From assembly GCA_026936335.1 (NCBI GenBank), contig JAPMXV010000029.1:1-64000 (forward strand): a stretch of 64,000 nucleotides of DNA. The letters are read 5' to 3'. The stretch is from Mantamonas sphyraenae STR306. Lineage: Eukaryota; Protista; CRuMs. Positions 11,252-56,584 of this stretch are shown piece by piece; the first letter of the stretch is position 1; each line of letters starts with the position of its first letter. The position numbers were made by a program, and so were the translations under genes. The notes under the pieces are model-generated. The model made no database searches and was not told where the DNA came from. It was given only the letters and a program-made list of their open reading frames with translations.

Positions 11252-12739
11252 TCACTCCTCCTCCACACGTTGCCTCTTCTCCACCTCCGGTTCCTCCTCC
11301 TCCTCCACCTCATCCCTCCCTCGCTTCCTGGTCTCCCCTGACTTCCCCACAGCGACCCTTGCCGGAGCAGCTCCCCTCCCCACCCACCCAATCACCCTCT
11401 CCATTACCTCATCCGGCAGTGTCACCCACCCTTCCCACCCTGCCTCCTCCACATACTCATCCATCCCTCCACACTCAAACATCACCTCCCTCTCCTCCCC
11501 GTTCATCACCAATGCCACCTCCATCGCTTCATCCACCTGTCCACCCCACCCAATCCAATGCCACGCCTTCCTCCACCCTTCCTTCCTCACCATCTCCACC
11601 GTTTTCATCCTCGGCTTTGCACCCCACTCCCGCAACACCTCCACAATCTCATCATCCCCATCCTCAACTGCTACCTCCAGCGCAGTGTACCACCCTTGAC
11701 TACCTGCAATCGTGTCCACAGGCACACCCCACTCCTTCAATTCAGCCATCTTCTCCACATCCCCACACTCCACAAACTCCTCGTGCTGCTCCTTGTTCCT
11801 CTCCAACAGTGACAGCAACGCATCATTTTCAACGCCGTGGATAATGCAGCACGACCGATTGCCTTGCATTGCCTGCACCAGTGATGCTTTTCCTTTGTCC
11901 CCAATGCTGCTACCAAGGAACAGTGCCTGCAGGCTGCAGTTCTCAGCCAGCGCCTGAGCAAGTGCTGCTGCTCCTTCGTCGCAGATTTTGTTGCGTCCGA
12001 GGTACAGTATCTGCAAGCTGCAGTTCTCAGCCAGCGCCTGAGCAAGTGCTGCTGCTCCTTCGTCGCAGATTTTGTTGCCTCCGAGGTCCAGTGTCTGCAA
12101 GCTACTGTTCACACACAGCGCCTGCGCAAGTGCAGCTGCTCCTTCATATCCAATGCTGTTGTCGCCGAGGAACAGTGTCTGCAAGCTGCTGTTCTTCTTC
12201 AGTGCCTGCGCCAGTGCTGCTGCTCCATCTGCCCCGATGCTGTTGTCGCCGAGGTCCAGTGCCTGCAAGCCGCTGTTCACACAAAGTGCCTGCACCAGCG
12301 CAGCTGCTCCTTCATACCCTATGCTGTTGGAGCCGAGGGACAGTGTCTGCAAGCTGCTGTTCTCACCCAGTGCCCGCCCCAGAGCTGCTGCGCCTTCTGC
12401 CCCGAATCTGTTGTGGCTGAGGATCAGTGTCTGCAAGCTGCTGTTCTGAGCAAGTGCCTGCGAAAGTGCCGCTGCTTCGTGGTCACTCAAGTACCAATTG
12501 CAAAGGTCCAATTTCTGTGTTCGAGGTGTCAACACACGTCCCACCCTTCCTACTCACCATCACACCCACCCTACCCCCATCCCTCCTCCCCTTCCCCGTG
12601 CGACGCACGTCACGCTCACCAACTCCCTCCCGATTTCTTTCCGTCAACTCACCCTTCCCTGAGCCTCCAAAGCTTCCACAATCCGCCCATGGTCCCCACT
12701 CTGCAACGATTCCACCCATTCTTCTCTTTCCAAGCCCAT
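11252..12739 (-). CDS. LRR-ANK-F-box-like paralog A (8 LRR, NLS-like tail); exons 12739-12653 and 12514-11252
   Basis: Exon 1 MGLEREEWVESLQSGDH...AQGR then GTGAGT donor; acceptor ACACAG; 28-aa LRRs; ankyrin-like TALEVAVEDGDDEIVEVLREWGA; WVTLPDEVMERVIGW. Confidence 0.88.
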
Positions 12740-13459
12740 AATTCCTGCGGTACTCCACGAGGTCAGCCCCTCTTGATTCCTCCTTCTCGTGCCTCTCTCC
12801 CTATCCCACCCTCACAAGCGCACAAGTCCCCGATTCCCCCGCCCTTCCCTACCCAATGACTGCTCTAAAGTGTGTGTGTGCAATATGCGTTGGATGCACC
12901 TCCGCACAGAGGAAAAGCAGCACTCTGTTCCTTCTTCGCCCCTTCACATCCCGCGTTCACAACACACACACCCAATCACTGTTCACAAACTGCCCACCTA
13001 CATTTTACCCAACTACGCCACAACGTCCACAGTAGAACGGCGTTCCACACCCTTTGTGCGCCCCACCATGCCTCCAGTCCACTCCTGACCCTCTTCCTCC
13101 ATCCACCACCACCACCACACATGAATGAACCACACCTTCCCTCTTCACTCTACTATCCTCCACACATTCCTCCCTCGTCCTTCCCAGCAGCACCTGCCAC
13201 GACTTGCCATCTTCCTTTGGCGGTTGTCTGCCTCCACCGCCCATGCATGCCCTCGTTCACTCTGCCCAGTGCATCCATGCCGTGCTATCACTCCCCAGAG
13301 TGCTTCACACAACGTTCTGTCTTTGTCCATCAGTGCCACCAGCATGGAAGAAACAACCGTTGGCCTCGTCCTCCTCCTGCTTGCCACTGCTGTGTTCACC
13401 CATGCGCCCCATGCAATGCCAATGGCGTCCGCCAAATTCATTCTTGCGACACGAATGAC

Positions 13460-14550
13460 TCTTCACCTTGCTTCCTCTTCCCGAATCTGAGTCGCCGCCC
13501 ATCTTCCTGCTCTTCGGCCCGCGTGTGCGGATGGCTGCGTCCATGCACACACACATGCTACCCCAACCGTCCCTCCTTCCCCCCACCCCTCTTCACCACC
13601 ATCCATCCCCATACCCTCCTCCCTTGCCACCCTGGGGTGATTTTGTCGCAAGGTGGCAATCCGGCCTCCATCAACTCCGCCTCCCACACACGCCACAGGC
13701 CCCTCCACGCCCTCATCCTCCGTTCTCTGGGCCCGCATCCTCCCATTCCACCTCTCCACCAAGTTCCTCAAATTCGATGAAAAATGTGCCTGGTGGTGGT
13801 CGTGGCGTCGATTTTGCTTGTCGCCTTGCCAGCCCAGCCGCACCTCGCCGCCTTCCTGCGCCACAAACCGCCCTCCCACAGACCACACACCCCCTTGATC
13901 ACCACGCCCACCTCTTGCACCTGTGTGCAGTCACCCACACACTTCCCAAGCACACTTCTACCACAGTCAGGCTGTGCATTCGTGAGCAGTGTCGCAGAAA
14001 CTCACGCAGCTTGGTGTCAGGCGGTGGGCCGAGCACCCGCACCTTTTGCCGCCGCCCTGCTCGCACCACAGGCCACCCCATGCCCTCAGCCTCGGTCTCC
14101 GCCCTCCACACATCAACCACACCCCACTGACCCTCATTCCACTTTTCGCCACTTTTCGACCATTGTCGACATGGTGAACAACCAGCCGCTCTCCACCAAA
14201 ATCACCCAAAATACGAAACTGCCTCTGCGCGTGTGTTTCCCATGCACTCGACTACACGCATGGTCTTAGGATCCAGTGAGGGCTGTGCGCTGACACAGGA
14301 CAGGGTTTGTGTGCGTTGATCCTCACACAGGCGGAGTTTCTACTTCGCTGGTGTCATCCATACAGCCACGGTGTCACCAAAGGCCAATGCATCATCCGCG
14401 ACAGTCCCATGGTATCCACTTCACAGAGAAGGAACATCCAGAGATGACTGACAAAGCGACCAGAGGCCCTATGAGCCACTGTGTGTTGGTCTCCCTCGTT
14501 CGCACCACCATGCCACAACCTCATCTCCAGGCAGGTGCAACCCACCATCC
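13460..14550. repeat. Intergenic repeat, copy 1 (diverged copy at ~29600-30550)
   Basis: Shared blocks such as AATTCGATGAAAAATGTGCCTGGTGGTGGTCGTGGCGTCG and ACACTTCCCAAGCACACTTCTACCACAGTCAGGCTGTGCATTCGTGAGCAG. Confidence 0.85.
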
Positions 14551-14762
14551 CCGCCATTGTCACCCATGCCGTCACTCCCTTCTCCCACTCGACCCCTTGA
14601 CTGCCCAACCCCAACCCAACAACACTGCACCCTCTTTGACCGTATCACACTCCGCATCACCTTCCATTCATTCCACTCTTCAACGCCTCTCCAATCCCTT
14701 GCCCTCCTCCTCCAAAAACCACCGCCTTGAATGAACGCATCCATTCCCACACCCTCCCCACC

Positions 14763-16350
14763 TCACTCTCCCCTCCCCACCCACCCAATCACCCTCTCCA
14801 TTACCTCATCTGGAAGCGTCACCCACCCTTCCCACCCTCCCTCCTCCAGATACTCCTCCATCCCTCCACACTCAAACATCACTTCCCTCTCCTCTCCATT
14901 CATCACCAACGCCACTTCCATTGCCCCATCCACCTGTCCACCCCACCCAATCCAATGCCACGCCTTCCTCCACCCTTCCTTCCTCACCATCTCCACCGTT
15001 TCCATCCTTGGCTTTGCACCCCACTCCCGCAACACCTCCACAATCCTCTCATCCCCTCGCGTCACTGCTCTCTCCAGCGCATTCTTCCTCCCCCTCTCCC
15101 CTGCAAACGTGTCGACAGGCACCCCCCACTCCATCAACTCTCTCATCCTCTCCACATCCCCACACTCCACAAACTCCACGTGATGCTTCCTGTTCCTCTC
15201 CAACAGTGACCACAAAGAGGTATCGAAAACGCCGTAGATCCTCCAGCAGGACCGATTGCCTTCCATTGCCCTTGTCAGTGCTGCTTCTCCCTCATCCATG
15301 ATGCTGATCCTGCTGAGGTCCAGCGACTGCAAGCTGTTGTTCTCAGCCAGCGCCTGCGCCAGTGCTGCTGCTCCTTCATCCCCGAGGCTGTTGTCGTTAA
15401 CTTCCAGCTTCTGCAAGCTGCTGTTCACACTCAGTGCCTGCGCCAGTGCTGTTGCACCGTCTGTTCCGATATTGTTGAGGCTGAGACCCAGTGTACGCAG
15501 GCTACGGTTCTCACACAGTGCCTTGGCCAGCGCTTTTGCTCCTTCTGTTCCGATGTTGTTGGTGTAGACAAAGAGTGTCTGCAAGCTGCTGTTCACACAC
15601 AGTGCCTTTGCCAGCGCTGCTGCTCCTTCTGCACCAACGCTGTTGCCCCAGAGCTTCAGTGAGTGCAAGCTGGAGTTCTCGCAAATTGCCTGCGCCAGCG
15701 CTGCTGCTCCTTCTGCACCGACGCTGTTGCCCCAGAGGTTCAGTGAGTGCAAGCTGGAGTTCTCGCAAATTGCCTGTGCCAACGCTGCTGCCCCTTCTGC
15801 CCCGATGTTGTTGTTGCCGAGAAAGAGTTTCTGCAAGCTGTTGCTGGCAATCAGTGCTTGCGCAAGTGCTGATGCGCCTTCTGCCTCGATGCTGTTGTCG
15901 TTGAGGTACAGTGTCTGAAGGCTGCGGTTCATACACAGTGCCTGCGCCAGTGCTGCTGCCCCTTCGTCCCCGATTCTGTTGCCGCTTAGTTCCAGTTTCT
16001 GCAAGCTGCTGTATTCACTAAGCACCTGCGCCAGTGCTGCTGCCCCTTCGTCCCCGATACTGTTCTTGTTCAACGACAATTTCCTCAAGCTCCTGTTCTT
16101 TCCCAGCGCCTTGGCCAGTGCTACTGCCTCATTGTCTCCCAACTGCTTGTGAACAATGATCAACTTCCGTGCTCCACGTGTCAGCACACATTCTTTCCCT
16201 TCGCCCACTCGCTTCTGGACGTGACACAACCATTCCGTCCGCGTTCCGGGCGCAACACACCTCTTCCTCTGCCTCCAGAGCACTGCCAATCCGTGCATGA
16301 TCCCCGCTCTGCAGCAAAGCCACCCAATCATCCATCTTTGTTGAGCTCAT
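14763..16350 (-). CDS. Paralog B (11 LRR, no tail); exons 16350-16261 and ~16163-14763
   Basis: Exon 1 MSSTKMDDWVALLQSGDH...; the family CAG acceptor reads CGG here, with an in-frame AAG 3 nt later. Confidence 0.82.
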
Positions 16351-16759: not shown

Positions 16760-18375
16760 TCACTCCTCCTCCACACGTTGCCTCTTCTCCACCGCTTCCT
16801 CCTCTTCCTCTTCCACCTCATCTCTCTCTCGCTTCCTCGTCTCCCCTGACCTCCCCACAGCGACCCTTGCCGGAGCAGCTCCCCTCCCCACCCACCCAAT
16901 CACCCTCTCCATCACCTCATCTGGAAGTGTCACCCACCCTCCCCACCCTGTCTCCTCCACATACTCCTCCATCCCACCACACGCAAACATCACCTCCCTC
17001 TCCTCAACATTCATCACCAACGCCACCTCCATCGCTTCATCCACCTGTCCACCCCACCCAATCCAATGCCACGCCTTCCTCCACCCTTCCTCCCTCACCA
17101 TCTCCACCGTTTCCATCCTTGGCTTTGCACCCCACGCTCGCAACACTTCCACAATCCTCTCATCCCCTTTCTCCACTGCTCTCTCCAGCGCCGTAGTCCT
17201 TCCGTACCCCCGTGCAAACGTGTCCACAGGCACACCCCACTCCTTCAACGCAGCCATCCTCTCCACATTTCCACACTCCACAAACTCCACGTGATGCTTC
17301 CTATTTCTCTCCAACAGTGACTGATAAGCGGCATTGCGAACGCCTTCGATGTTCCAGCACGACCGATTGCCCTCCATTGCCTGCCCCAGTGCTGCTGCTC
17401 CTTCGTCCCCGATTCTGTTGTCGCTGAGGTACAGTATCTGCAAGCTGCTGTTCTCCCTCAGCGCCTGCGCCAGTGCTGTTGCACCTTCTTCCCCAACGCC
17501 GGTACCGGTGAGGTCCAGATTCTGCAAGCTGCGGTTAACACTCAGCGCCTGCGCAAGTGCAGCTGCTCCTTCTGCCCCGATGCGATTGCTGACGAGTTGC
17601 AGAGTCTGAACGCTGCTGTTCTCAATCAATGCCTGCGCCAGTGCCGTTGCTCCATCGGCCCCGATCCCGTTGTCCCAGAGATTCAGTCTCTGCAAACTGC
17701 TGTTCGCAATCAGTGCCTTCGCAATTGCAGCTGCTCCATCTTCCCCGATGCTGTTGAGCCTGAGGTTCATTGCCTGCAAGCTGCTGTTCTCCCTCAATGC
17801 CTGCGCAAGTGCCGTTGCTCCATCTGCCCCGATCCCGTTGTCCCGGAGGTCCAGTGTCTGCAAGCTGCTGTTCCCACCCAGCGCCTGCGCAAGTGCCGTT
17901 GCTCCATCTGCCCCGATCCCGTTGGCGCTGAGATCCAGTCTCTGCAAGCTGCTGTTCCCACCCAGTGCCTGCGCCAGTGCTGCTGCGCCTTCTGCCCCGA
18001 TGCTGTTGTTGTAGAGTTTCAGTGTCTGCAAGCTGCTGTTTAAACAAAGTGCCTGCGCCAGTGCGGCTGCTCCTTCGTCTCCAATTCTGTTCCAGCCGAG
18101 GCTCAGTATCCGCAAGCTTGTGTTCGTCCCTAGCGCCTTGGCCAGTGCTACTGTCCCATAACCTCCGAGGTTCGCGAATTCAATACTCATCATCTGTGCT
18201 CCACGTGTCAGCACACACTCCATTGTTGCTCTTCATCCGCTTCCTGACGTGCCAAACATCCCTCCGCATCCCAGTCGCAACCCACCTCTCCCACTGCCTC
18301 CAGTGCGCTACAAATCCGTTCATGATCCCCGCCATTCAGCAACTTGCGCCACTCTTTCCTCTTCGACGACTTCAT
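16760..18375 (-). CDS. Paralog C (10 LRR, NLS-like tail); exons 18375-18286 and 18193-16760
   Basis: Exon 1 MKSSKRKEWRKLLNGGDH; GT..CTGAC..CAG intron; family domains intact. Confidence 0.9.
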
Positions 18376-18949
18376 ATCGTCTGCGTTGCCCGTTGCGAGA
18401 GCGTGAGCACCTCCGTTCCCTCCCCCTCCCTTCTGCCGCCGCCCTCCTCCTCCCTCTCCACCACCACTCCATCCCACACGTCCTCTGTCCACCCCACTCC
18501 ACCTACATTGCGACCCTGCGAGAATGTGACAGCTCCAAGATGCGTTGCCTCCTGCTGCGCTTGCACCCCGCCCACTCCCTTCCCCCCTCCCTCCCCGCTC
18601 CCTCCGATTCCAGCAAAGTCACCCCTCCCCTCTCCACCTCCCCTGAACTCTAAACTCGACCCCTATCCCCTCAAAAGCACGTCCATTCCACCTGCCGATC
18701 ACCCACCACCAGCCACTGTTCACTCCTCCTCCACAACGGTTTGAGAGGTGTACCCACCCAGTGCACACTGCCGGATGAGGTGATAAACAGGGTCTTTGGA
18801 TGGATCGGAAAGACATAGTCCCACACGTGACCAACCTGAACGTGCTGCCGATTTTTCGCGTTCAGCCGGTGCGTGGAACGGGGTTGAAGCGGAGAGCAGA
18901 TGGGCAGCAGCGTGTGAGATCAGCTCACATGAAATACCGTCCAGACACA

Positions 18950-20728
18950 ATGACCACACAGGGGGCAGTCGACTGGACCACCCTGTTGCGCGACGGCGAC
19001 GAGAAGCAGATTTGTTCCGCGTTGGAGGCTGCAGGAAAGGCAAGGCGAGGATACGAGAGCGTGCAATGGCCGTGCCGTGCTGCTGACACGCGTCGTCAAA
19101 ACCAGGAATTGGATCTTGCGCAAAGACGTGTCGAAAAGTCTGCCGCGGCCACAGATGTGTTGGACGCTTTTCACAACAGAATCGGTGTCCACGAAGCAGG
19201 CGCACTGGCCAAAGCACTGGAGGCGAACACAACCATCCAAACACTGGACTTGTCTTTGCAAAGCACATGCGATGACGGAGCGGTGGCATTGGCCGCCGCA
19301 CTGGCAACAAACACGTGTTTGCGCACACTGAATCTGAAAGGCAACTGCATCGGGGCCGAGGGGACAGCTGCACTTGCCCAAGGATTGTCACAGAATACTT
19401 CATTGCAGGGATTGCATCTTGGGGCGAACAGCATTGGCGCAGAAGGAGCTGCTGCACTCGCACAGGCATTGGTTGTGAGTGTGCACCTGACCTCACTGGA
19501 CCTCACCAACTGCGACATCGGCACCCGTGGGGCGTGCGCACTGGCCGTTGCACTGGAAGAGAATCACGGGTTGCGCACACTGAACCTCAACCACAACAAC
19601 ATCGGCCCAAGAGGAGCAACTGCGTTGGCCACCGCCGCTGTGGCACGGAGCTGCAGTTTGGAGATGCTCACGCTCGGCGACAACGTGGTAGGCGCAGACG
19701 GAGCAGCAGCCATGGCCAACGCATTGCGTGGAAACCACTGTTTGCAGACACTGGACCTCAGCGCCAACTGGATCGGGGCAGAAGGGGCTGCAGCACTGGC
19801 CAAGGGGCTGCAAGGAAACACCAGCCTGTAGGAGCTCAACCTCGATCGCAACGCCATCGTCTCGGAAGGAGCCACAGTGCTGGCCGAAGCGCTGGAGGGA
19901 AGCAGCAGTTTGCAGACGCTGACACTCGGGAGAAACGGAATCGGGCCGGAAGGGGCCGCGGCTCTGGCCAGGGCACTGCAGAAGAACGTCAGCTTGCACA
20001 CACTGGACCTGAACAACAACAGCGTCGGAGAGCATGGGACCACAGTGCTGGCCGAAGCGCTGGAGGGAAGCAGCAGTTTGCAGACGCTGAAACTTGTCAG
20101 GAACGGCGTCGGCCCGGACGGGGCCGTGGCTCTGGCCAGAGCTTTGGAGAGGAACCGCAGCCTGCAGAGACTGTTCCTGCGAAACAATAGAATGGGTGCA
20201 CAGGGGGCAAAGGCACTGGCCGAGGCACTGGAGGAGAACAGGAGCTGCTGGGAAATCGACGGCATCGGGCAGAGTGCGACCACAGCAAGAAATCGTGACA
20301 TGGCCCATTCGTTCGTGATGAGTGCTGGACGAGGAGATGTCAAAGCGATGGAGGAGCTGCTGGCTTGGGGTGTGTCTGTGGACACGTGTGCAGGGGATGG
20401 AGGAGGCAAGGAGGAGACTGCGTTGGTGAGTGCTGTGCAACGCGAGGATGAGGCAGTGGTCGAGTTGTTGCGAGCGTGGGGTGCGAAACCAAGGATGGAA
20501 ACGGTTAAGATGGTGAGGGAGGCAGGGTGGAGGAAGGCGTGGCATTGGATTGGATGGGGTGGAGAGGTGGATGTGGCGATGGAGACGGCGCTGGTGATGA
20601 ATGGGGAGGAGAGGGAGGTGATGTTTGAGTGTGGTGGCATGGGAGGGTATGAGGCGACGTGTGATTGGTGGACGGTGCCGGATGAGCTGATGGAGAGGGT
20701 GTTGGAGTGGCTGGCCAAGGGAGGGTGA
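18950..20728 (+). pseudogene. Inverted, divergent paralog D (~14 LRR) with an in-frame TAG at 19829-19831
   Basis: ORFs 18800-19831 and 19877-20728 share a frame and are separated by one TAG at the Gln (CAG) position of an LRR; ankyrin and WTVPDELMERVLEW C-terminus intact; putative GC-AG intron at 19040-19105. Confidence 0.8.
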
Positions 20729-23024: not shown

Positions 23025-24378
23025 TCACAGATGGCCGATCCACTTTGCCACACGTTCCATCACCTCGTCTGGAACGGTGCTCCACAGGGCCGTGGGAACA
23101 TACCCTTCCATCCCTCCTGCTTCAAACATCACATCCCGTTCCTCAGCGTTCATGGCCAGGACGACTTCCAATGCGGTGTCTTGCTCCACGGTGCCCAACA
23201 CCCAATGCCACGGTTTCCGCCATTCCCAATTTGAACCCCCGATCGATTTTGTGAATGAATACGTCGCCTGTGCCCCCCAACGCCTCAGTTGTGCAACCAC
23301 AGCATCCTGTCTGGCTTCCATGGCCAGCTGCAAGGCGGTATGCCCGTGCTCGCCTGCCCGAGCGTCCACAGCGACACCCCACTCTCTCAACTCGCCCATG
23401 GTGGCAATATCGCCACGCTGCGCAGCTGTTGTAAACTTCCTCGCTTGTGTCAAGTTGAACACCCTCTTGCAGCAGTCGATGCGCAAGCAAGTCGTGTTGT
23501 TGGTCAAAGCAGTCGTCAATTCCGTTTGCCCCAAGTCGTTGATGGGATTCTTGGCCAGATCAAGAATCTGCAGAGTGCTGTTTGAATGCAGGGCTGTGGC
23601 GATGGCGATGGCTCCGTCGTCATCGATGCTATTGTGGTAGAGATTCAGAGACTGCAGGGTGCTATTTGCCAACAGAGCAGTAGCCAAGGCAACAGCGCCT
23701 TTTCATTCGATGTGGTTGTGGGCGAGTGAAAGGTCTGTCAGCCTGACGTTGTGTGTGAGCGCTGCAGCGAGGGCCTCTGCGCCTTGGCAGCTGATTTGGT
23801 TGTGGGTGAGTGTCAAGATGCACAGAGAAGTGTTTGCAGAAAGCCAACTGGCCAACGAGGCGGCAAAGGCGTCGCCAACGGTGTTGAAGGCGACGTTCAG
23901 CTCGTTCAACGTGTTGTTTGCATCCAGACGGAACGACTCGTCATCGAGGTTGGTTTTCAGGAGACTGAGGAGAGCAGAGAGTTGTTGTGGTTCAACGACT
24001 CGATGATTGCAATGCATCCTTTGCTTTCGATGACATTGCTGTTCAGCTTTAGCGTGTGGACGGTTGTGTTGGCGGTGAGGGCCTTGGCAAGGGCGGTTGC
24101 GCCGTGAGGGCCTACACCGCTCCGTGTGAGGTCCAGGACTTGAGGGTGGTGTTTGTGGCAATGCCAAATGATGCCAAAGAGGCGATTTGGGTGTCTGTGA
24201 GCTGCCATTGCCGCAGTGAGAGCGACTTGAGAGCGGGGGTGGGGTGGAGGCGAGTCAGGGCAGGTCCTTGCGCAGCAGCAAGGGGGAATGCGATTCAGCG
24301 TACTTTCCCAGCGTGTGACAGTGCCTCTTCAATAGACAATGGGTCGGAGGGGGAATCCAGCAGGTGATTCCAGTCCAT
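23025..24378 (-). pseudogene. Divergent frameshifted paralog E
   Basis: Exon-1-like MDWNHLLDSPSDPLSIEEALSHAGK then GTACGC (24378-24304); LRRs split across ORFs 23957-24208, 23703-24167 and 23025-23687; ankyrin GHTALQLAMEARQDAVVAQLRRWGA; WSTVPDEVMERVAKW. Confidence 0.8.
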
Positions 24379-24454: not shown

Positions 24455-26802
24455 TCACCCATCTCCTACGACCCACCCAATCACCCTCTCCATCACCTCA
24501 TCTGGCAGTGTCATCCACTCTGCACTCGGTTCATACGCCTCCATCCCACCACACTCAAACATCACCTCCCTCTCCTCCCCATTCATCACCAACGCCACCT
24601 CCATCGCCTCATCCACCTGTCCACCCCACCCAATCCAATGCCATGCCTTCCTCCACCCTGAATTCCTCACCATCTCCACCGTTTCCATCCTCGGCGTCGC
24701 TCCCCACGCTCGCAACACCTCCACAATCCTCTCGTCCCCTCGCTTCACTGCTCGCTCCAGCGCAGTTTCCTTTCCACTCTCCCCTGCAAAGGTGTCCACA
24801 GGCACACCCCACTCCCTCAAATCAGCCATCCTCACCACATCCCCACACTCCACAAACTCCACGTGCAGCGTCTTGTTTCTCTCCAGCAGTGACTGATAAG
24901 CCCAATGGTGGTGGTAAAGGATGCTCCAGCACGACCGATTGCCACGCATCGCCTGCGCCAGAGCTGCTGCTCCTTCTCCACCAATGCTATTGTCTCTGAG
25001 GCGCAGTTCCTGCAAGCTGCGGTTCTCACTCAGTGCCTGCGCCAGTGCTATTGCTCCTCCGACCCCGATGTTGTTGTAGCTGAGTTCCACAGTCTGCAAG
25101 CTTCTGTTCTCACTCAGTGCCTGCCCCAGTGCTACTGCTCCTTCTGCCCCGATACTGTTGCTGTGGAGATCCAGTGCCTGCAAGCTGCTGTTCTCACTCA
25201 GTGCCTGCGCCAGTGCCGCTGCTCCTTCGTCTCCAATACTGTTGTCGCCGAGTTCCAGTTTCTGCAAGCTGCGGTTCTCACTCAGTGCCTGCGCCAGTGC
25301 TATTGCTCCTCCGACCCCGATGTTGTTGTAGCCGAGTTCCAGAGTCTGCAAGCTACTGTTCTCGCTCAGTGCCTGCGCCAGTGCTGCTGCTCCGTCGTCC
25401 CCGATGCTGTTGTTTCGGAGGTCCAGTCTCTGCAAGCTGCAGTCCATACTCAGAGACTGCCCCAGTGCGGCTGCTCCTTCTGCCCCGATGCTGTTTTCGC
25501 TGAGGTGCAGTGTCCGCAAGCTGCTGTTCTCACTCAGTCCCTGAGCCAGTGCTGCTGCTCCATCGTCCCCGATGCTGTTGTTGTAGAGATCCAGTGTCTG
25601 CAAGCTGCTGTTTAAACAAAGTGCCTGCCCCAGTGCTGCTGCTCCTTCGTCCCCGATGCTGTTGCCATAGAGTTCCAGAGTCTGCAAGCTGCTGTTCTCG
25701 CTCAGTGCCTGCGCCAGTGCTGCTGCCCCTTTTCCCCCGATGCTGTTGCTGCTGAGGTCCAACGTCTGCAAGCTGGTGTTCTCACTCAGTCCCTGCGCCA
25801 GTGCTGCTGCTCCATCATTCCCAATCCTGTTGTTCCAGAGGTTCAGTTTCTGCAAGCTGCTGTTCATAAGCAGAGCCTGCCCCAGTGCTGCCGCTCCTTT
25901 GTCACCGATGCTGTTGTGGCTGAGTTCCAGAGTCTGCAAGCTGCTGTTCATACTCAGAGCCTGCGCCAGTGCTGCTGCTCCTTCGTCCCCGATGCTGTTG
26001 TGGCTGAGGTCCAGAGTCTGCAAGCTGTTGTTCTCACACAATGACTGCGCCAGCGCTGCTGCTCCTTCGTCACCGATGCTGTTCGTGCTGAGTTCCAGAG
26101 TCTGCAAGCAGCGATTCTCACACAATGACTGCGCAAGTGCCGTTGCTCCTACTGTCCCTATGCTGCTGCCCCCAAGCTTCAGTATCTGCAAGCTGGTGTT
26201 CTCACACAATGCCTGACCCAGTGCTGCTGCTCCTTCTGCCTCGATGTTGTTGTCGCTGAGACCCAGTATCTGCAGGCTGTGATTCTCACACAATGACTGC
26301 GCAAGTGCCGTTGCTCCTTCTGTCCCGATGCTTGCGTAACCAAGCTTCAGTGTCTGCAAGCTGGTGTTCTTACTTAGTGCGTGCGCCAGAGCTGCTGCGC
26401 CTTCGTCCCTGACTCTGTTACTTCTGAGGTCCAGTGTCTGCAGGCTACTGTTCGTATACAGAGCCTGCGCCAGTGCGGCCGCTCCTTTGGCTCCAATTCC
26501 GAAGCCGAGCTTCAGCGTCTGCAAGCTTGTGTTCGTCCCCAGCGCCTTGGCCAGTGCTACGGCCTCATTGTCTCCCAGCTTCTGCGTGATATTAATGCTC
26601 ATAATACTCAGCTTCTGTGTCCCACGTGTCAGCACACACACACCATGGTTTCCCTTCTCCCGCCCGCTTCTGCACGCGCCAAACATCCCGCTGCGTTCCA
26701 GGCGCAACCCACCTCTCCCTCTGCCTCCAGTGCCCTACAAATCTGTGCATAATCCCCGCTCTGCAGCAAAGCCACCCAATCGTCCGTCCGCAGCGAGTTC
26801 AT
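24455..26802 (-). CDS. Paralog F (20 LRR, the longest; no tail); exons 26802-26713 and 26614-24455
   Basis: Exon 1 MNSLRTDDWVALLQSGDY; conserved intron; intact ORF. Confidence 0.9.
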
Positions 26803-34383: not shown

Positions 34384-34554
34384 TTTGTCTGTGTTGCCCG
34401 TTGTGAGCGCGTGGGCTCCGACCTTTCCCTCTCCCCCTCCCCCCTCCCGGCTCCAGCGCCCAGCCTCCTCTACCACCACCACCACCACCATCATCATCAT
34501 CAGTCCATCCTGCGCCTTCTCTGTCCTTCAACTCTACCTCCTTTCTGTGATTCC

Positions 34555-37533: not shown

Positions 37534-38731
37534 TCACTCCTCCTCCACACGTTGCCTCTTCTCCACCTCTTCTTCCTCTTCCTCCTCCTCGTCATCTCTC
37601 TCTCGCTTCCTCGTCTCCCCTGACCTCCCCACCGCGACCCTTGCCGGTGCAGCACCCCTTCCCACCCACCCAATCACCCTCTCCATCACCTCATCCGGCA
37701 GTGTCACCCATCCTTCCCACCCTGTCTCCTCCACATACTCCTCCATCCCACCACACGCAAACATCGCCTCCCTCTCCTCCCCATTCATCACCAATGCCAC
37801 CTCCATCGCCTCATCCACCTGTCCACCCCATCCAATCCAATGCCACGCCTTCCTCCACCCTTCCTTCCTCACCATCTTGACCGTTTCCATCCTCGGCTTC
37901 GCTCCCCACGCTCGCAACACTTCCACAATCCTCTCATCCCCTTTCTCCACTGCTCTCTCCAGCGCCGTCTCTTTTCCTCCATTCCCTGCAAACGTGTCCA
38001 CGGGCACGCCCCACTCCCTCAACTCTCTCATTTTCTCCACAACCCCACACTCCACAAACTCCACGTGCTGCCTCTGGTTCCTCTCCAACATCGACCGCAA
38101 CGCGACATCGAAAACGCCCTCGATCTTCCAGCACGACCGATTGCCTTGCATTGCCTGCGCCAGTGATCCTCCTCCTACGGTCCCGATGCTGTTGTAGCTG
38201 AGGTCCAGAGTCTGCAAGCTGCTGTTCTCAATAAGTCCCTGCGCCAGTGCTGCTGCTCCCTCGCTACCGATTCTGATGCTGCTGAGGTTCAGTCTCTGCA
38301 AGCTCCTGTTCTCCCTCAGAGCCTGCCCCAGTGCTGCTGCTCCTTCGTCCCCGATTCTGTTGAGGCTGACGTCCAGTTTCTGCAAGCTGCTGTTCTCAAT
38401 AAGTCCCTGCGCCAGTGCTGCTGCTCCTTCGTCCCCGATTCCGTTCCAGCTGAGGATCAGTGTCTGCAAGCTGCTGTTCTCCCTCAGTGCCTGCGCCAGT
38501 GCGGCTGCCTCATTGTCACCCAGAAGATCGCCACAAATACTCAAACACTGTGTTCCACGTGTCAGCACACACACACTCCATGGTCGCCCTTGATCCGCTT
38601 CTTGCACGTGCAACACGGCCCTCTGCCAAGTCCCAACCCACCTCTCCCTTTGCCTCCACTGCGCTGTGAATCTGTGCATGATCCCCGCTCTGCAGCAACG
38701 CCACCCAATCAACCACCTTCAGATTGCTCAT
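37534..38731 (-). CDS. Paralog K (5 LRR, the shortest; NLS-like tail); exons 38731-38642 and 38547-37534
   Basis: Intact ORF; conserved intron. Confidence 0.9.
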
Positions 38732-43449: not shown

Positions 43450-44010
43450 TATTCCTACCTTCAGAGTCAGATTCTGTGAGGATGTTCAGGTTGTTAGATG
43501 CGTTGCATGCTGCTGCTGCGCTTGCCAAGGACCCCGTGCACACCCTGCGTCCGCCTTCCTCCTCCCTCTCCATCACCAGCCAAATCTGCACGTCCTCTAT
43601 CCATCCACTTTACTTGCCTTCTGAATCAAATTCTTCTGTGAGGATGGTCAGGTTGTTAGATGCGTTGCATGCTGCTGCTAGGCTTGCCAAGGACCACGTG
43701 CACACCCTGCGTCCGCCTTCCTCCTCCCTCTCCATCACCAGCCAAATCTGCACGTCCTCTATCCATCCACTCCACTTGCCTTCTGAATCAAATTCTTCTG
43801 TGAGGATGTTCAGGTTGTTAGATGCGTTGGATGCTGCTGCTAGGCTTGCCAAGGACCCCGTGCACACCCTGCGTCCGCCTTCCTCCTCCCTCTCCATCAC
43901 CAGCCAAATCTGCACGTCCTCTATCCATTCACTTTACTTGCCTTCTGAATCGAATTCTTCTGTGAGGATGTACAGGTTGTTAGATGCATTGGATGCTGCT
44001 GCTGCGCTGG
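43450..44010. repeat. 162-bp tandem repeat, about 3.3 units, upstream of paralog M
   Basis: TTCTGTGAGGATG recurs at 43472, 43634, 43796 and 43958. Confidence 0.95.
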
Positions 44011-44029
44011 AAGGACCCCGTACACCCAA

Positions 44030-44610: not shown

Positions 44611-46421
44611 TCACTCCTCCTCCACACGTTGCCTCTTTTCCTCCTCCTCTTCTTCCTCCTCATCCCTCACTCGCTTCTTCGTCTCCCCTGACCTCTCCAC
44701 AGCGACCCTTGCCGGTGACGCACCCCTTCCCACCCACCCAATCACCCTCTCCATCACCTCATCCGGCAGTGTCACCCACCCTTCCCACCCTCCCTCCTCC
44801 ACATACTCCTCCATCCCACCACACCCAAACATCACCTCCCTCTCCTCACCATTCATCACCAATGCCACCTCCATCGACTCATCCACCTGTCCACCCCACC
44901 CAAACCAATGCCACGCCTTCCTCCACCCTGCCTTCCTCACCATCTCCACCGTTTCCACCCTCGGCTGCGCACCCCATGCTCGTAACACCTCCACAATCCT
45001 CTCATCCCCTCGCTCCACTGCTCTCTCCAGCGCAGTTCTCGTCCCTTCATCCCCTGCAAATGTGTCCACAGGCACCCCCCACTCCCTCAACTCTCTCATC
45101 TTCTCCTCATCTCCACACTCCACAAACTCCGCGTGCTGCTTCTTGTTCCCTTTCAACAGCGACTGCAAAGCGCTGTTGGGAGCGCCCAGGATGTTCCAGC
45201 ACGACCGATTGCCTTCCATTGCCTTTCTCAGTGATGCTGCTACTCGTTTGTTGACACTGTTGTGTTTGAGGTCCAGCGTCAGCAAACTCTTGTTCACACT
45301 CAGTGCCTGCGCCAGTGCTGCTACTCCTTCTGCCCCGATGCTGTTCCGGCTGAGGTCCAGTGTCTGCAGATTGGTGTTCACCCTCAATCCCTGCCCCAGT
45401 GCCGCTGCTCCTTCGTCACCGATGCTATTGTTCCAGAGAATCAGTGTCTGCAAGCTGGAGTTCTCACCGAGTGCATGCCCAAGTGCTGCTGCTCCTTTTG
45501 CACCGATGCTGTTGTACTGGAGGTTCAGGTTTTGCAAACTGCTGCTCTTGCTCAGTGCCTGCCCCAGTGCTGCTGCCCCTTCTGCCCGGATAAAGTTGTT
45601 CCTCAGGTCCAGCGTCTTTATGCCGCTGTTCCCACAGAGCACCTGCCCAAGCGCTACTGCCCCTTCGTCCTCGATGCTGTTGTCCCAAAGATTCAGTGTC
45701 TGCAAGCTGTTGTTCTCACTCAGCCCCTGCGCCAGTGCTGCTGCTCCTTTTGCCTTGATCCTGTTGCCGGAGAGGTCCAATGTCTTCAAGCTGCTGTTTC
45801 CACTCAACAACTTGGCAAAGGTTGCTGCTCCTTTCTCCCCGATGCTGTTGTCTCTGAGGTTCAATGTCTGCACGCTGGAGTTCTCTCTGAGTGCATCTGC
45901 CAGTGCTGCTGCTCCTTTGTCCCCGATGCCGTTGTATCTGAGGTTCAGTGTCTGCAAGCTTCTGTTCTCCTCCAGTCCCTTGGCCAGTGCTGCAGCTCCT
46001 TTTGCCCCGATGCCGTTGTGTTCGAGAACCAAGCTCTGCAAGCTGTAGTTCTCAACCAGTCCCTGCGCCAGTGCTGCTGTTCCTTTTGCACTGATACTGT
46101 TGTGGCTGAGGTCCACGGTCTGTATGCTACTGTTTTCGCAAAGTGCCTGCGCAAGCGCTGCTGCACCCTTCGCTCCGATGTTGTTCCCCCCGAGCAGCAG
46201 TGTCTTCAAGGTGCTAGTCTTCCCCAGCGCCTTGGCCAGCGCTACTGCCTCATTGTCTTTTAGCCCAACGTCAACAATACTCGTCACCTGTGCCACGCGT
46301 GTCAGCACACACTCTGTTGTTGCCTTGAGTCCCAGACACAACCCACCTCTCCCTCCGCCTCCAGTGCACTGCAAATCCGTTCTTGATCCCCACTCTGTAG
46401 CAAGTCTTCCCAATCAACCAT
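44611..46421 (-). CDS. Paralog N (13 LRR, NLS-like tail); exons 46421-46347 and 46287-44611
   Basis: Exon 1 MVDWEDLLQSGDQ; 59-bp intron; intact ORF. Confidence 0.88.
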
Positions 46422-48132: not shown

Positions 48133-49637
48133 TCACCTGGGTGCAGCACCCCTCCCCACCCACCCAATCACCCTCTCCATCACCTCATCCGGCAGTGTCA
48201 TCCACTGCGCAGTCGGTTCGTACGCCTCCATCCCTCCACACTCAAACATCGCCTCTCTCTCCTCCCCGTTCATCACCAGCGCCACTTCCATCGCCTCATC
48301 CACCTGTGCACCCCACCCAATCCAATGCCACGCCTTCCTCCACCCTGCCATCCTCACCATTTCCTCCGTTCTGCTACTCGGCTTCGCACCCCACGCCCGC
48401 AACACCTCCACAATCCTCTCGTCCTCACCCTTCACTGCTCGCTCCAGCGCCGTATACCACCCTTGCTCACCTGCAAACGTGTCCACAGGAACACCCCACT
48501 CCCTCAACTCTCTCATCTTCTCCACATCTCCACACTCCACAAATACTTCATGTTGCTTCTGGTTCCTCTTGAACAACCGCTGCAGCGCTTCAGCGTTGAC
48601 GCCTCTGATTTTAGAGCAAGCTCGATTTCTTTCCATTGCCATGGCCAGAGCAGCGGCCCCTTCTTCCCCTATGCTGTTGTTAATGAGGTCCAGCATCTGC
48701 AAGCTGCTGTTCTCATTCAGACCCTTTGCCAGTGCTTCAGCTCCCTGATCCCCAATGTTGTTGTTCCAAAGGTCCAGAGTCTGCAGGTTGCTGTTCTCAC
48801 TCAGTGCCTGAGCCAGTGCCGTTGCTCCTTCTGCACCGATGCTGTTGCGGCTGAGGTTCAGTAAGTGCAAGCTGCGGTTCCCCTTCAGTCCCTGCGCCAG
48901 TGCTGCTGCTCCTTCGGCCCCGATGCTGTTGCTTCTGAGTTCCAGTCTCTGCAAGCTGCTGTTTACACCCAGTACCTGCCCCAGTGCTGCTGCTCCTTCG
49001 TCCCCGATCATGTTGTCGTAAAGGTTCAGCCTCTGCAGGCTACTGTTCTCTCTCAGTGCCTGCGCCAGAGCTGATGCTCCTTTGTCACCGATGCTGTTGC
49101 GACCAAGCACCAGTTCCTTCAAGCTACTGTTCTCACTCAGTGCCTGCGCCAGTGCTGCTGCTCCTTCTGCCTCGATGCCGTTGATGCTGAGATCCAATGT
49201 TTGCAAGGTGCTGTTGACACACAGTGCCTGGGCCAATGCTACTGCCCCCACTGCCCCGATCCTGTTGCGACCAAGTACCAGTTCCTGCAGGCTTTTGTTG
49301 ATACCCAGTGCCTGTGCCAATGATGCTGCTTCTTCTGCCCCGATGCTGTTCCACTGGAGCGTCAACGTTGTCAGGCTGTGGTTCGCAGCCAGCGCCTTGG
49401 CCAGCGCTACTGCCTCCTTGACTCCTAACTGCTTGTTGTTAATACGCAGCTTTTGTACACCATGTATGCCATGTCAGCACTCCACTGTTGCCCTTCTTCC
49501 ACTTCTTGACCTGCAACACGTCCCTCCCGCTCTCTCCTTGCGTTCCGGTCCCAGCCTACCTGTCCCTGTGCCTCCAGTGCACTACAAATCTGTGCATGGT
49601 CCCCGTTCTTCAGCAGATCAATCCAATCGGTATTCAT
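48133..49637 (-). CDS. Paralog O (10 LRR, no tail); exons 49637-49560 and 49449-48133
   Basis: Exon 1 MNTDWIDLLKNGDH then GTAGGC donor; an AAG acceptor restores the frame. Confidence 0.85.
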
Positions 49638-51727: not shown

Positions 51728-53728
51728 TCACCTTCCCCTCCCCACCCACCCAACCACCCTCTCCATCACCTCATCCGGTAGTGTCACCCACCCTTCCCAC
51801 CCTCTCTCCTCCACATACTCCTCCATCCCTCCACACTCGAACATCGCCTCCCTCTCTTCCCCATTCATCACCAATGCCACCTCCATACCCTCATCCACCT
51901 GTCCACCCCATCCGATCCAATGCCACGCCTTCCTCCACCCTTCCTCCCTCACCATCTCCACCGTTTTCATCCTCGGCGTCGCTCCCCAACCCCGCAACAC
52001 CTCCACAATCCTCTCGTCCTTTCGCTTCACTGCCCTCTCCAGCGCAGTCGTCTTCCCTTCATCCCCTGCAAACGTGTCCACAGGCACACCCCACTCCCAC
52101 AACTCTCTCATCGTCTCCACATCCCCACACTCCACAAACTCTACATGCTGCTTCCTGTTTCTCGTTAAAGGCGACTCCAAAGTGCCATTGCGAACACCCG
52201 CGATGTCCCAGCACGACCGATTGACTTCCATTGCCTTTGTCAGTGCTGCTGCACCTTCTGCTCCAACGCTGTTCCAGTTAAGGTTCAGTTCCTGCAGGCT
52301 GTTGTTCTCACTCAGCCCCTGCGCCAGTGCTGCTGCTCCTTGGTCCCCCATGCTGTTGTCCCAGAGGTCGAGTACCTGTAAGCTGCTGTTCTCCCTTAGT
52401 GTCTGTCCCAGTGCTGCTGCTCCTTGGTCTCCTATGATGTTGAACCCAAGTCGCAGGGTCAGCAAGCAGCTGTTCTGACTCAGTGCCTGCGCCAGTGCTG
52501 CTGCTCCTTTTGCATCGATGTCGTTTCCCGTGAGGCACAGTGTCTGCAAGCTGCTGTTCTCACTCAGTGCCTGCCCCAGCGCTGCTCCTCCTTTTGTATC
52601 GATGCTGGTGTTCTGGAGACTCAGTACCCGCAAGCTTCTGTTCTTCGCCAGTCCCTTGGCCAGTGCTGCAGCTCCTTCGTCGCCGATGCTGTTGTTGCTG
52701 AGGTCGAGTGTCAGCAAGCTGTTGTTCTCATCCAGTGCCTTGGCCAGGGCGGCTGATCCTTCTGCCCCGATCAAGTTGATGTGGAGGTCCAGAGTTTGCA
52801 AGCTGCTGTTCTTCCTCAGTGCCTGCGCCAGCGCTTCTGCACCTTCCACATCGATTACGTTGCCGCTGAGGTTCAGCTTCTGCAAGCTACTGTTCTCCCT
52901 CAGCGCCTGGGCCAATACTGCTGCACCTTTGCCCCCGATGCTGTTCCTGCTGAGGTTCAGTTCCTGCATGCTACTGTTCTCTTTCAGAGCCTGCCCCAGC
53001 GTTGCTGCTCCTTCTGCTCCGATGTTGTTGCTAGAGAGGTCCAGCGTCTTCAAGTTGTTGTTCTCCTTCAGTGCCTGCCCAAATGCTGCTGCTCCTTCTG
53101 CCCCGATGCCGTTGTTTCCGAGCTCCAGAGTGTGCAAGCTGCTGTTCTCGCTCAGTGCCTGCCCCAGCGCTGTTACTCCTTTGTCCCCGATGCTGTTGCA
53201 GCTGAGATTCAGCTTCTGCAATGTTCTGTTCTCACCCAACGCCTTGGCCAATGCCGTTGCCCCGACATCCTCCATGCTGTTCTGGCTGACGTTCAGCACC
53301 CGAAGGCTTCTGTTCACACACAGCGTCTGCGCCATCACCGCTGCTCCTTGTGCCCCAATCATGTTGTCGTCCAGGACAAGGGTCTGCAAGCTGTCGTTCT
53401 CGCTCAGTGCCTCCGCGAGTGCTGCTGCTCCTTTGGCCCCAATACTGTTGCGGCTGAGGTCCAGCTCCTGCAGGCTCTTGTTCTTTCCCAGCGCCATGGC
53501 CAGTGTTGCTGCCTCTTGGTCCCCCAGCTTCTTGCCATGAATAACCAACTCCTGTGCCCCGCGTGTAAGCACTCACTCCGTTGGTACCCTTTGCTACCAT
53601 GCCAAGCGTCAACGTGCGTTCGTCCCGTCCCAGCCCACCTTTTCCTCTGCCTCCAGTGCAGCACACACCCGTGCATGATCCCCATCACGCAGCAAGGCAC
53701 GCCAGTGATTTGCATCCATTGAGCTCAT
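51728..53728 (-). CDS. Paralog P (16 LRR, no tail); exons 53728-53639 and 53551-51728
   Basis: Exon 1 MSSMDANHWRALLRDGDH; intact ORF. Confidence 0.9.
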
Positions 53729-54779
53729 TGTGTCTGCCCTGCCTTTGTGAGTGTGAGTGTGAGCGCGCCTGCAGCTGTGGGTGCACCCGCCTTCCCCTCC
53801 TCTCCCCTCTCCACGGCCACAGTCCATCCCGCGCATTGTCCATCCATCCAACCCACCTACCCTGAGGTTTCCTTTACAATGTGGCTGTTCCAAGATGCGT
53901 TGCATGCTGTTGCGCAAGCCGACTCTCTGCCCATGCCTCTGCAGGTCCTCTCTCCCCAACTGTGCATGGTTTGCGTGCGTCCCACCCAGCCCCTGAAGTG
54001 ACCAGCCGCCTAGCAGGCAACCAAACCCACCATGCACCAGTTCGATGCGATATCCTCCATGTGGCCATCCACACACCCGTCGTCTCCCTCGCCCAAAGTC
54101 ACACACCCAATGTATTGATGGCATCTCTCCACAACGACCACCTGCCCTGCGGATCCGTCCTCCACCACCCTCTTCCCGTACACAGGTCCCGCTCCTCCTT
54201 GTCTGCCTGTCCTGTGCATGCCCACTCTCTCGCAACCACAGAGCCCCTCTGCCAGTCTCAAAGTGTGCATCCCAGCCGCTGCCTTTGTTCCTCTCCACAG
54301 CATCCTCCCATGTCGATCTCCCCTTCCGTCCATCTCCCACTCAACCACACAACCAGCTCTGGTTGGTCCTTCTCGACCACCGAGCCATCGCACGAGAGCA
54401 CACCGCATCAGCCTTGTGCAATCCCACTGTCGACACCGGGACTATGTCCCGCCCACAATCACCTTGGTGTCCTCCAAACACCCCTTTGCCCACCTTGGCA
54501 AACACAGACTGCCCGCGTCGACCAAACACCTCCTCCCTTACCATCCTCCCTTCCCGATGGTGTCCACTTTGCCTTCAACCTCCCAATCCTGTGCCCACCC
54601 TTGACCCCAATGCCTCCTGGGCGACGATGGCGTTGGCCTGCCAGCGTTCCCGGGAACTCGTCTCCTCCACCTTGTCTCCACTCCCCGTGATGGCCCACAA
54701 GTCCACGCCAGGATCAAACCCTTCCCAAATGGTCCCAAAGAAGTGCACACACCATTTCTCGACCAGCAATCCACCCTGT

Positions 54780-54908
54780 TCACTCCTCCTCCACACGTTG
54801 CCTCTTCTCCACCTCCTCTTCTTTCCCCTCATCCCTCTCTCGCTTCCTCCTCTCCCCTGACTTCCCCACAGCGACCCTTGCCGGTGCAGCACCCCTCCCC
54901 ACCCACTC
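54780..54908 (-). repeat. Orphan copy of the family's 3' tail cassette (WVGRGAAPARVAVGKSGERRKRE...KRQRVEEE*)
   Basis: Second tail directly downstream of the paralog Q stop, with no LRR or ankyrin part. Confidence 0.85.
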
Positions 54909-54933
54909 ACTGCTGCTGATCAACCCCCACTGT

Positions 54934-56584
54934 TCACTCCTCCTCCACACGTTGCCTCTTTTCCACTTCTTCTTCCTCCTCATCCCTCTCTCGCTTCTTC
55001 GTCTCCCGTGCTCTCAGCCACCAGGGGACCCTTGCCGGTACAGCACCCCTCCCCACCCACCCAATCACCCTCTCCATCACCTCATCCGGCAGCGTCATCC
55101 ACTCTGCACTCGGTTCATACTCCTCCATCCCACCACATCCAAACATCGCCTCCCTCTCCTCCCCGTTCATCACCAACGCCACCACCACCGCCTCATCCAC
55201 CTGACCACCCCATCCAATCCAATGCCACGCCTTCCTCCACCCTTCCTCCCTCACCAACTCCACCGTTTCCACCCTTGGTTTTGCACCCCACGCCCGCAAC
55301 ACCTCCACAATCCTCTCATCCCCTCGCTTCACAGCTCGCTCCAGCGCAGTCTGCGTCCCTTCATCCCCTGCAAACGTGTCCACAGGCACACCCCACTCCC
55401 TCAACTCCCTCATCTTCTCCACATCCCCACACTCTACAAACTCCACGTGCTGCATCTTGTTCCTTTTCAACAGCCACTGCAGATAGCAATTGCCAACGCC
55501 CAGGATTGCCCAGCAGGACCGATTGTCCTGCATTCCCTCCGCCATTGCTGCTGCTCCTTTGTCCTCGATCCTGTTCCGGCTGAGGTTCAGTGTTTGCAAC
55601 CTCTTGTTCACCCTCAACCCCTGCGCCAGTGCTGCTGCTCCTTTGTCCTCGATGGTGTTGTCCGTAAGGCTCAGTGACTGCAAGCTGTCGTTCTCGCTCA
55701 GTGCCTTTGCCAGTGCTGCTGCTCCTTCTGCCCCGATGCGGTTATTGTCGAGCACCAGTCTCTGCAAGATGGTGTTCTCACACAGCGCCTGCGCTAGTGC
55801 TGCTGCTCCTTTGTCCCCGATGCCGTTGGCCCTGAGGTTCAGTGACTGCAAGCTGCTGTTCACACTCAGTGCCTGCTCCAGTGCTGCTGCTCCCTCGTCC
55901 CCGATGCCGTTGGCCCTGAGGTTCAGTGTCCGCAAGCTGTTGTTCACACTCAGTGCTTGCAGCAGTGCTACTGCTCCTTCTTCCTCGAAGCTGTTGTTGT
56001 TGAGGTGCAGCGTCTCCAAGGTCGTGTTCTCTCTCAGTGCCTGGCCCAGGGCTACAGTGCCTTCGTCGCCGATAAAGTTGAAGCCGAGATCAAGTGTCTG
56101 CAAGCTGCTCCCATTCAGTCCCTCTACCAGCGATGCTGCTTCTTTTTCCCAGATTTTGTTCCAACTGAGGCCCAGCGTCTTCAAGCTGCCGTTCACCTCC
56201 AGTGCCAGCGCCAGCTCCACTACTGCTTCGTACTCGAGGTTGTTGTCGTCGAGGAAAAGTGTCTCCAAGCTGCTGTTCCAACACAGTGCCCGCCCCAGTG
56301 CTTCTACCCCTTTGACCCCAATGTTGTTGGAGTCGAGGTGAACTATCTGCAAGCTGCTGTTCCTTCTCAGTGCGTCTCCCAGCGCTACTACCTCGTGGTC
56401 TCCTAGCCCCATGCCACTCATACTAAAACACTGTGTTCCACGTGTCAGCGCACCCTCCATTGTCCTCCATCCACTTCTTGAGGCACAAGACGTCCTGTGC
56501 CTCCCAGTCCCAACCCACCTCTCCCTGTGCCTTCAGTGCACTGCAAATCTGTTCATGGTCCCCCTTCCGTAGCAGCTCATCCAT
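54934..56584 (-). CDS. Paralog Q (11 LRR, NLS-like tail); exons 56584-56519 and 56430-54934
   Basis: Exon 1 MDELLRKGDHEQICSALKAQGE; intact ORF. Confidence 0.88.

Follow-up and report, generated by a model that had tools for sequence, protein, structure and literature searches.

A telomere-enriched gene family of Mantamonas sphyraenae with variable leucine-rich repeats and an orphan C-terminal module

Introduction

Animal ASB proteins consist of ankyrin repeats followed by a C-terminal SOCS box, a helix-linker-LP-helix adaptor, and the F-box and MATH-BTB expansions of nematodes and plants combine a constant docking part with a diversifying substrate-binding part in hundreds of clustered paralogs that are under positive selection. 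A role in innate immunity was reportedly proposed for such families by Thomas in 2006, and to our knowledge almost nothing is known about how free-living protists defend their cytoplasm. The C-terminal F-boxes of poxviral proteins are composed of two helices, and the contacts with Skp1 are made mostly by the first helix and the loop preceding it (PMC4353913); the same review reports that cowpox CP77 binds Skp1 with the first F-box helix alone. In the F-box consensus of Orientia proteins, the positions relevant to Cul1 binding are 1, 2, 4, 9 and 17 (PMC11895443). Here we describe an array of 17 paralogous genes that encode leucine-rich repeats (LRRs), ankyrin repeats and a constant C-terminus in Mantamonas sphyraenae, a marine flagellate of the CRuMs group whose telomeres are TTAGGG and for which 9,416 genes are predicted (PMC10492846). 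The analysed DNA, hereafter the window, comprises bases 1-64000 of contig 29 in a genome assembly of 25,061,354 bp and 78 contigs; searches and folding were run on single exons, and exons were joined only for frame checks.

Results

A telomeric array of a genome-wide family

The window starts with a telomeric (CCCTAA)n repeat of 24.7 copies (1-147, plus strand), which forms the left end of contig 29, and a tblastn search with the constant region located 17 full copies at 11255-55533, bearing out the initial annotation, which had claimed 17 paralogs near a telomere. The array spans 11.3-56.6 kb from the telomere, and the end coordinate assigned to it earlier, 56584, coincides with the last copy's ATG. 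Sixteen copies lie on the minus strand and are transcribed toward the telomere, and one (18950-20728) is on the plus strand. All 17 were located, but copies 4 and 5 are broken and copy 7 is devoid of the family ATG; the other 14 are intact, one of them with an altered tail. The constant C-terminus is 72-90% identical among 15 conserved copies and 58% and 41% in two divergent ones, and arrays of 84-bp LRR units are present in all 15 conserved minus-strand copies as well as in the plus-strand copy; with the counts of LRR cores given below, this upholds the proposed pairing of a variable LRR array with a near-constant C-terminus. Two short remnants of the constant region were also found by tblastn, at 18738-18812 and 54783-54905.

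The family extends throughout the genome. The constant region returned 386 candidates genome-wide, of which the best 150 matches were scored, and a profile of the C-terminal tail returned 390; the union of matches from several searches, counted by hand, amounts to at least 238 loci, or 2.5% of the gene number. Among the best 150 matches, 37 are located within 20 kb of a contig's start, which corresponds to about 6% of the genome, and all of these are on the minus strand; in the same set, a distance of approximately 4.0-4.5 kb separates the gene from the contig end on the left of about 12 contigs and on the right of at least three. At approximately 4.0-4.2 kb from the end, a family gene stops on the left of contigs 4, 7, 9, 18, 19, 22, 30, 31, 41, 60 and 68 and on the right of contigs 46, 54 and 73, and this position suggests a terminal block common to many ends, unlike that of the window. 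Divergent members are often internal on contigs. In the fetched loci, the tail module follows RI-type LRRs, degenerate LRRs, long ankyrin arrays or mixtures of these, and nearly all members have the full module at the C-terminus; it is this module, not the LRRs, that defines the family. No mention of LRR or ankyrin families was found in the M. sphyraenae genome paper (PMC10492846), and no publication was found that describes the family or pairs "Mantamonas" with "leucine-rich repeat". The genes belong to an undescribed, very large and telomere-enriched host family with an orphan module.

As far as testable, the array did not arise from misassembly: public DNA contigs from two runs match unique stretches, the longest of 792 bp, with zero mismatches and support it locally, none of them covering the whole stretch. 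The public contigs used here are assembled and come from one study. In the contigs of a further public run, 56431-56518 and 56593-56716 are skipped exactly, that is, copy 17 is spliced both at its predicted coding intron and at a GC-AG intron upstream of the ATG. The type of this run is unrecorded, and it was taken as RNA because of the exact splice joints; it also covers the unique LRR stretch 52806-53160 of copy 16. At least one copy, copy 17, is therefore transcribed and spliced. Contigs from the same run also map to the spacer between copies 16 and 17 (54256-54673), one with a 255-base loose end, and could possibly represent a long untranslated region or a transcript of a paralogous spacer.

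The C-terminal module and its likeness to an F-box

The tail module comprises approximately 65 residues (33144-33340, minus strand, in copy 9), with 14 columns invariant across 44 diverse members. Its motif consists of WxxxxH, a long helix D..E..L.MN..ER..MF.GGM, a loop and a terminal LPDEV helix. In the terminal helix, P2 and E4 are found in 44/44 members, L1 in 34/44 and V or I at position 9 in 44/44, with a hydrophobic residue at position 10 in 42/44 and at position 13 in 44/44, so that the F-box helix-1 consensus, a short motif, is matched at six positions (1, 2, 4, 9, 10 and 13). The layout is also that of the ANK-PRANC proteins, with N-terminal repeats and the C-terminus in the position of a truncated F-box.

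These features, together with the variable concave LRR face and the constrained tail described below, make it our best if tentative reading, to which we assign a probability just short of even, that the proteins act inside the cell as a lineage-specific repertoire of substrate receptors of a cullin-RING ligase, SCF being the likeliest. The concave LRR face would bind varying targets, the terminal LPDEV helix would dock on Skp1/Cul1 in the manner of a minimal one-helix F-box, the bound targets would be ubiquitylated and then degraded, and the copies with a basic/acidic/basic tail might be sent to the nucleus; more speculatively, the targets could be proteins of viruses, intracellular bacteria, prey or selfish elements. 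By analogy, the one-helix F-box function appears plausible because the helix fits the helix-1 consensus and CP77 offers a one-helix precedent. The genome encodes two Skp1-family genes, with Skp1 in the region of 38361-38504 on contig 35, and several cullins and has 73 canonical F-box matches, none of them at the listed family tails; the Skp1 and cullin partners exist, and nothing in this ties them to the family.

A number of observations weigh against this reading. The F-box, PRANC and SOCS models of Pfam have no match to the tail at E up to 10 in the 17 copies and 44 members, genome-wide F-box-like and SOCS searches returned none of the listed family loci, and comparison of the tail with an F-box profile from a small alignment gave a probability of 1-4%, which is noise. 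F-box helices 2-3 and D17 are absent, many of the proteins stopping approximately 17 residues after the leucine, and T-L-P-D-E is a common helix-start motif. Most of the invariant tail residues are upstream of the terminal helix, where an F-box does not explain them, and fold searches with the hairpin model of the tail found only generic hairpins (best Z 5.2, TM <=0.51). Finally, the analyses made here provide no link of the family to viruses or bacteria.

The earlier description of the C-terminus as F-box-like is consequently only partly upheld: the terminal helix fits the helix-1 consensus, but it is a single helix and matches no F-box, PRANC or SOCS model. The tail falls outside these families because D17 and helices 2-3 are absent and the profile comparison is at noise level. 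With respect to the F-box, the three-helix motif of about 45 residues is lacking and the structural model ends after one helix following the LP; with respect to PRANC, there is no PF09372 match, nor D17 or helix 2; and with respect to the SOCS box, neither the BC-box pattern nor a PF07525 match is present at the family loci. No relatives of the tail were found among 150 matches listed from 1.84 billion representatives, which matched via the ankyrin part, among 5.8 billion proteins covered by two region searches, which required similar length and exact 5-mers, in viral, metagenome or prokaryotic contigs, in PDB sequences or in Pfam. The giant-virus domain DUF5903, an Atlas lead for the tail, was rejected because PF19260 matches nothing in the genome.

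Some ankyrin-type members also have, near the N-terminus, an abbreviated internal copy of the module in which the last helix is degenerate and about 20 middle residues are missing (hhalign 78%, E 2e-5). Examples of this short module are L047:1884-2045, L046:1697-1837 and L031:6698-6850, and it has 16 matches in the genome. Such copies would agree with variable sensors whose constant adaptor serves something other than a cullin ligase, the orphan hairpin binding some other fixed host partner or self-associating, in signalling, autophagy, trafficking or chromatin, and resembling an F-box by chance; the spread of the invariant residues over the whole 65-aa module, not the last helix alone, and the failure of every ligase-box model to score the tail point in the same direction. 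We nonetheless hold such an adaptor to be somewhat unlikely, as no search produced an alternative partner or fold, nearly all fetched members end in the full module, like truncated F-box adaptors, and its helix fits the six F-box positions.

The LRR-ankyrin solenoid

The conserved copies follow a common gene model with a first coding exon of 22-30 residues, a phase-0 GT-AG intron and one long exon. The intron is 59-138 nt long with a CTGAC-type branch site, and the first exon encodes a helix pair with a W..LL..GD motif, a helical N-cap. An exon motif upstream of copy 17 (g55) recurs before most copies. A 162-bp tandem repeat at 43472-44025 (3.4 copies, 94%) reiterates the exon/promoter unit that lies upstream of copy 13, and a similar duplication also precedes copy 17.

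Between 4 and approximately 19 LRR cores were detected per copy, spaced nearly always by exactly 28 residues, and Pfam LRR_6 matches two copies with E-values of 7e-27 and 6e-35; the repeats form an RI-type LxxLxLxxN solenoid. In the AlphaFold2 model of the main exon of copy 9 (33138-34193, pLDDT 93.9), seven LRR turns are followed by a long helix and two ankyrin repeats; after these come two short helices and one of 23 residues, then a loop and the final helix, which starts from PDEV, and the model is continuous from the LRRs through to the tail. The ankyrin part noted initially does retrieve PDB ankyrins with an alignment profile (E 6e-15) and displays the helix-turn-helix and TAL/TPL motifs, its helices being visible in the model, but it is limited to two repeats with weak Pfam scores. 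Signal peptides and convincing membrane helices are absent from all copies, and seven copies end in a basic-acidic-basic tail resembling a bipartite nuclear signal. Each protein is a soluble solenoid of an N-cap, RI-type LRRs and two ankyrin repeats, followed by the conserved helical-hairpin module. Pfam searches gave no NACHT or NB-ARC match, which places the family outside the NLRs, and there is no room for such a domain or for an effector domain because only the 22-30-aa first exon precedes the LRRs.

Fold searches with the LRR part retrieved NOD2, NLRP, ribonuclease inhibitor, LegL1 and giant-virus LRR proteins; these matches reflect the generic RI-type solenoid and are uninformative on origin. 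The matches to ribonuclease inhibitor, NOD2/NLRP and LegL1 and the continuity of the model from LRR to tail would be in keeping with stand-alone inhibitors, in which the LRRs neutralise foreign enzymes or toxins and the ankyrin pair and hairpin serve as a cap; this explanation is nevertheless quite improbable, since a cap would not need 14 invariant, partly polar residues, nor would it be expected to be kept behind unrelated solenoids at hundreds of loci.

With the whole exon as query, only generic RI-LRR proteins were retrieved. Two of these end in an LP helix, and their profile comparison with the tail is at noise level: P0226 (residues 430-480) and the C-terminus of P0232 have a helix-loop-LPxE/D-helix in or at the end of otherwise unrelated RI-LRR proteins, one of which is from the fungus Jimgerdemannia, with a similarity to the tail that is not significant. 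A helix-loop-LPxE/D-helix after RI-type LRRs is possibly a recurrent design.

Diversification of the binding face and exchange between copies

The variability of the LRRs was assessed in 135 exact 28-aa units, and pN/pS was calculated from 67 disjoint pairs of existing repeats picked by identity, with recombination not modelled. Positions 5, 7 and 8 of LxxLxLxxN face the concave binding surface of LRR proteins, and these have the highest entropy of the unit (3.1, 3.0 and 3.7 bits). First, pN/pS at the concave positions is 1.56 (95% CI 1.34-1.80) relative to the pS of the whole unit. Next, relative to the pS of their own codons the value is 1.17 (CI 0.89-1.63) and not significant. Finally, pN/pS is 0.92 at the exposed convex positions, 0.32 in the LRR framework, 0.45 in the ankyrin part and 0.22 in the tail module. 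From these ratios, the tail module is under purifying selection, and diversifying (positive) selection on the concave LRR face is likely, the data being suggestive of it rather than proof. The initial view of a variable-region/constant-region design is supported by the most variable concave face and the constrained tail, and can be extended to at least 238 loci.

The copies also exchange sequence. The nearest unit is within the same gene for 34 of the 135 units, against 9.5 expected, identical LRR units occur inside one gene, and nearest neighbours shift segment by segment along the genes. A segment of approximately 0.8 kb, made up of spacer and the 3′ tails of copies 10 and 11 (g35/g38), is 99-100% identical at a distance of 2597 bp (34391-35200, repeated at 36988-37800), the rest of the unit being 80-90% identical. 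The same-gene nearest units, the shifting neighbours and this near-identical segment point to unequal crossover and gene conversion, the segment to a recent event of one or the other kind. Internal duplication alters repeat number, about 4 to 19 per copy, and paralogs and chromosome ends have swapped whole segments; contigs 75 and 54 carry the same end as contig 29, including the broken copy and the inverted copy. That the family reflects mostly neutral birth and death at chromosome ends, with a gene of modest function amplified by ectopic recombination and its surface constraint relaxed, would agree with the terminal blocks common to contigs 29, 54 and 75, the near-identical spacers, the broken copies and an own-codon interval that includes 1, but is very improbable given that 14 of the 17 copies have remained intact, that purifying selection acts on framework and tail, that the concave positions vary more than the exposed convex ones, and that splicing is seen.

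A mobile-element origin was also considered and rejected on account of the retained introns, the protein-level conservation of the tail and the lack of a transposase or reverse transcriptase among the open reading frames scanned. Outside the genes, contig 75 repeats the segment 148-800 at its end (100%), and contig 54 also contains it (95%). A spacer of approximately 1 kb at 13733-14706 is repeated at 29741-30709 (83%) and on contig 75 (91%); no coding role and no Rfam match were found for it. Between 10000 and 57000, genes and spacers alike have a strong G>C and A>T bias on the coding strand, with a GC skew on the plus strand down to -0.6 that fades beyond 58 kb.

The individual copies and the neighbouring genes

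All copies except copy 4 are on the minus strand. Copy 1 (g11, 11252-12739) is intact and encodes 449 aa, with an intron at 12652-12515 and an acidic/basic tail. Copy 2 (g15, 14763-16350; 496 aa, intron 16260-16164) and copy 3 (g17, 16760-18375; 507 aa, intron 18285-18194, acidic/basic tail) are likewise intact. The inverted copy 4 (g19, 18950-20728) is divergent, with a predicted GC-AG intron at 19040-19105 and an in-frame TAG at 19829-19831. Copy 5 (g23, 23025-24378), also divergent, is broken by frameshifting and a TGA near 23702; its counterparts on contigs 54 and 75 are 95-97% identical, and the one on contig 54 (97%) is an open frame of 423 aa. The intact copy 6 (g25, 24455-26802; 749 aa, intron 26712-26615) has the longest LRR array, about 19 units. 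Copy 7 (g28, 27444-29275, from stop to intron donor) has an open main exon of 579 aa and a first coding exon lacking the family ATG, and in copy 8 (g31, 30858-32487), open over 509 aa, the tail continues in another frame.

The remaining nine copies are intact. Copy 9 (g33, 33135-34383) encodes 382 aa, copy 10 (g35, 34937-36980) encodes 647 aa with identical internal LRR duplications and an acidic/basic tail, and copy 11 (g38, 37534-38731; 367 aa), with the same type of tail, has the shortest LRR array. Copy 12 (g40, 39362-41198; 578 aa) is a mosaic whose nearest neighbours differ by segment. Acidic/basic tails are also present in copy 13 (g42, 41756-43356; 501 aa) and copy 14 (g45, 44611-46421; 583 aa), the latter with a short 59-nt intron. 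Copy 15 (g48, 48133-49637) encodes 464 aa, copy 16 (g52, 51728-53728), which contains the unique LRR stretch, 637 aa, and copy 17 (g55, 54934-56584; coding intron 56518-56431) 520 aa; the spliced GC-AG intron upstream of its ATG is on the same strand. The remnant at 54783-54905 (minus strand) derives from an acidic/basic tail and is duplicated in a 154-bp tandem.

Next to the telomere, a single-exon gene at 833-5494 (plus strand) encodes 1553 aa with a likely signal peptide, many 23-aa LRRs (a 69-bp repeat present 14.5 times), a Cys-rich linker and a multi-pass membrane part with a weak TRP match, and its product is predicted to be a receptor-like surface protein. It is followed at approximately 5700-7800 (minus strand) by a broken gene whose SPRY (E 3e-6) and LamG-like (E 1.5e-4) parts lie in separate frames; a perfect tandem duplication of 145 bp at 6902-7193 interrupts it. 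On the far side of the array, a 2009-aa open frame at 57969-63998 (minus strand) reaches the window edge and includes about eight IPT/TIG domains, SBBP, ephrin-receptor-like Cys repeats and DUF7630; it probably encodes a surface protein.

Discussion

The family comprises 238 to approximately 390 loci that combine a seemingly diversifying binding face with one invariant orphan module, and the partner of this 65-aa tail provides a single testable handle on all of them. If the partner is Skp1, C-terminal one-helix F-boxes would be a host invention as well and not a pathogen trick alone, and a whole class of such proteins would have been missed by current F-box models; if it is something else, the tail would represent a new adaptor module. 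A broader extension of the ligase-receptor reading, in which 2.5-4% of the genes of a deep-branching free-living eukaryote would constitute a germline-encoded, recombination-shuffled recognition repertoire whose LRR and ankyrin sensors lead to ubiquitin via the one-helix-F-box tail, as a form of cell-autonomous immunity mirroring the ANK-PRANC proteins, is in our estimate unlikely.

Among the described systems, the ANK-PRANC and F-box proteins of poxviruses, Orientia and Wolbachia (PF09372; PMC4353913, PMC11895443) share with the family a solenoid that comes first, a C-terminal LPxE helix and multiple copies. In contrast, the Mantamonas genes are host nuclear genes with introns, encode mostly RI-type LRRs and exist in hundreds of copies, and their tail is an unrelated 65-aa module that has no PRANC or F-box score and is devoid of helix 2 and D17. 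The animal ASB proteins are similar in their ankyrins and C-terminal helix-linker-LP-helix, whereas the family has neither the BC-box pattern nor a PF07525 match. Parachlamydiaceae NEX1/PEX1 (PMC4209131) and Ralstonia GALA (PMC2244805) are likewise expanded families that combine LRR arrays of differing length with a ligase-adaptor domain that stays constant; they are, however, bacterial, with a canonical N-terminal F-box, BTB or U-box, whereas in the family the order is reversed and the box non-canonical. The nematode and plant expansions have a recognisable N-terminal F-box or BTB domain, in contrast to the orphan C-terminal module and the concentration at chromosome ends seen here. The LRRs of the NLRs (NOD2, NLRP) and ribonuclease inhibitor form the same 28-aa RI-type solenoid with a variable concave face, but the family is without NACHT or NB-ARC and without CARD, PYD or TIR domains. 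By this analogy, the family would function like the repeat-plus-ligase-box expansions represented by ANK-PRANC, NEX/PEX, GALA and the nematode F-box proteins, while being a member of none of them.

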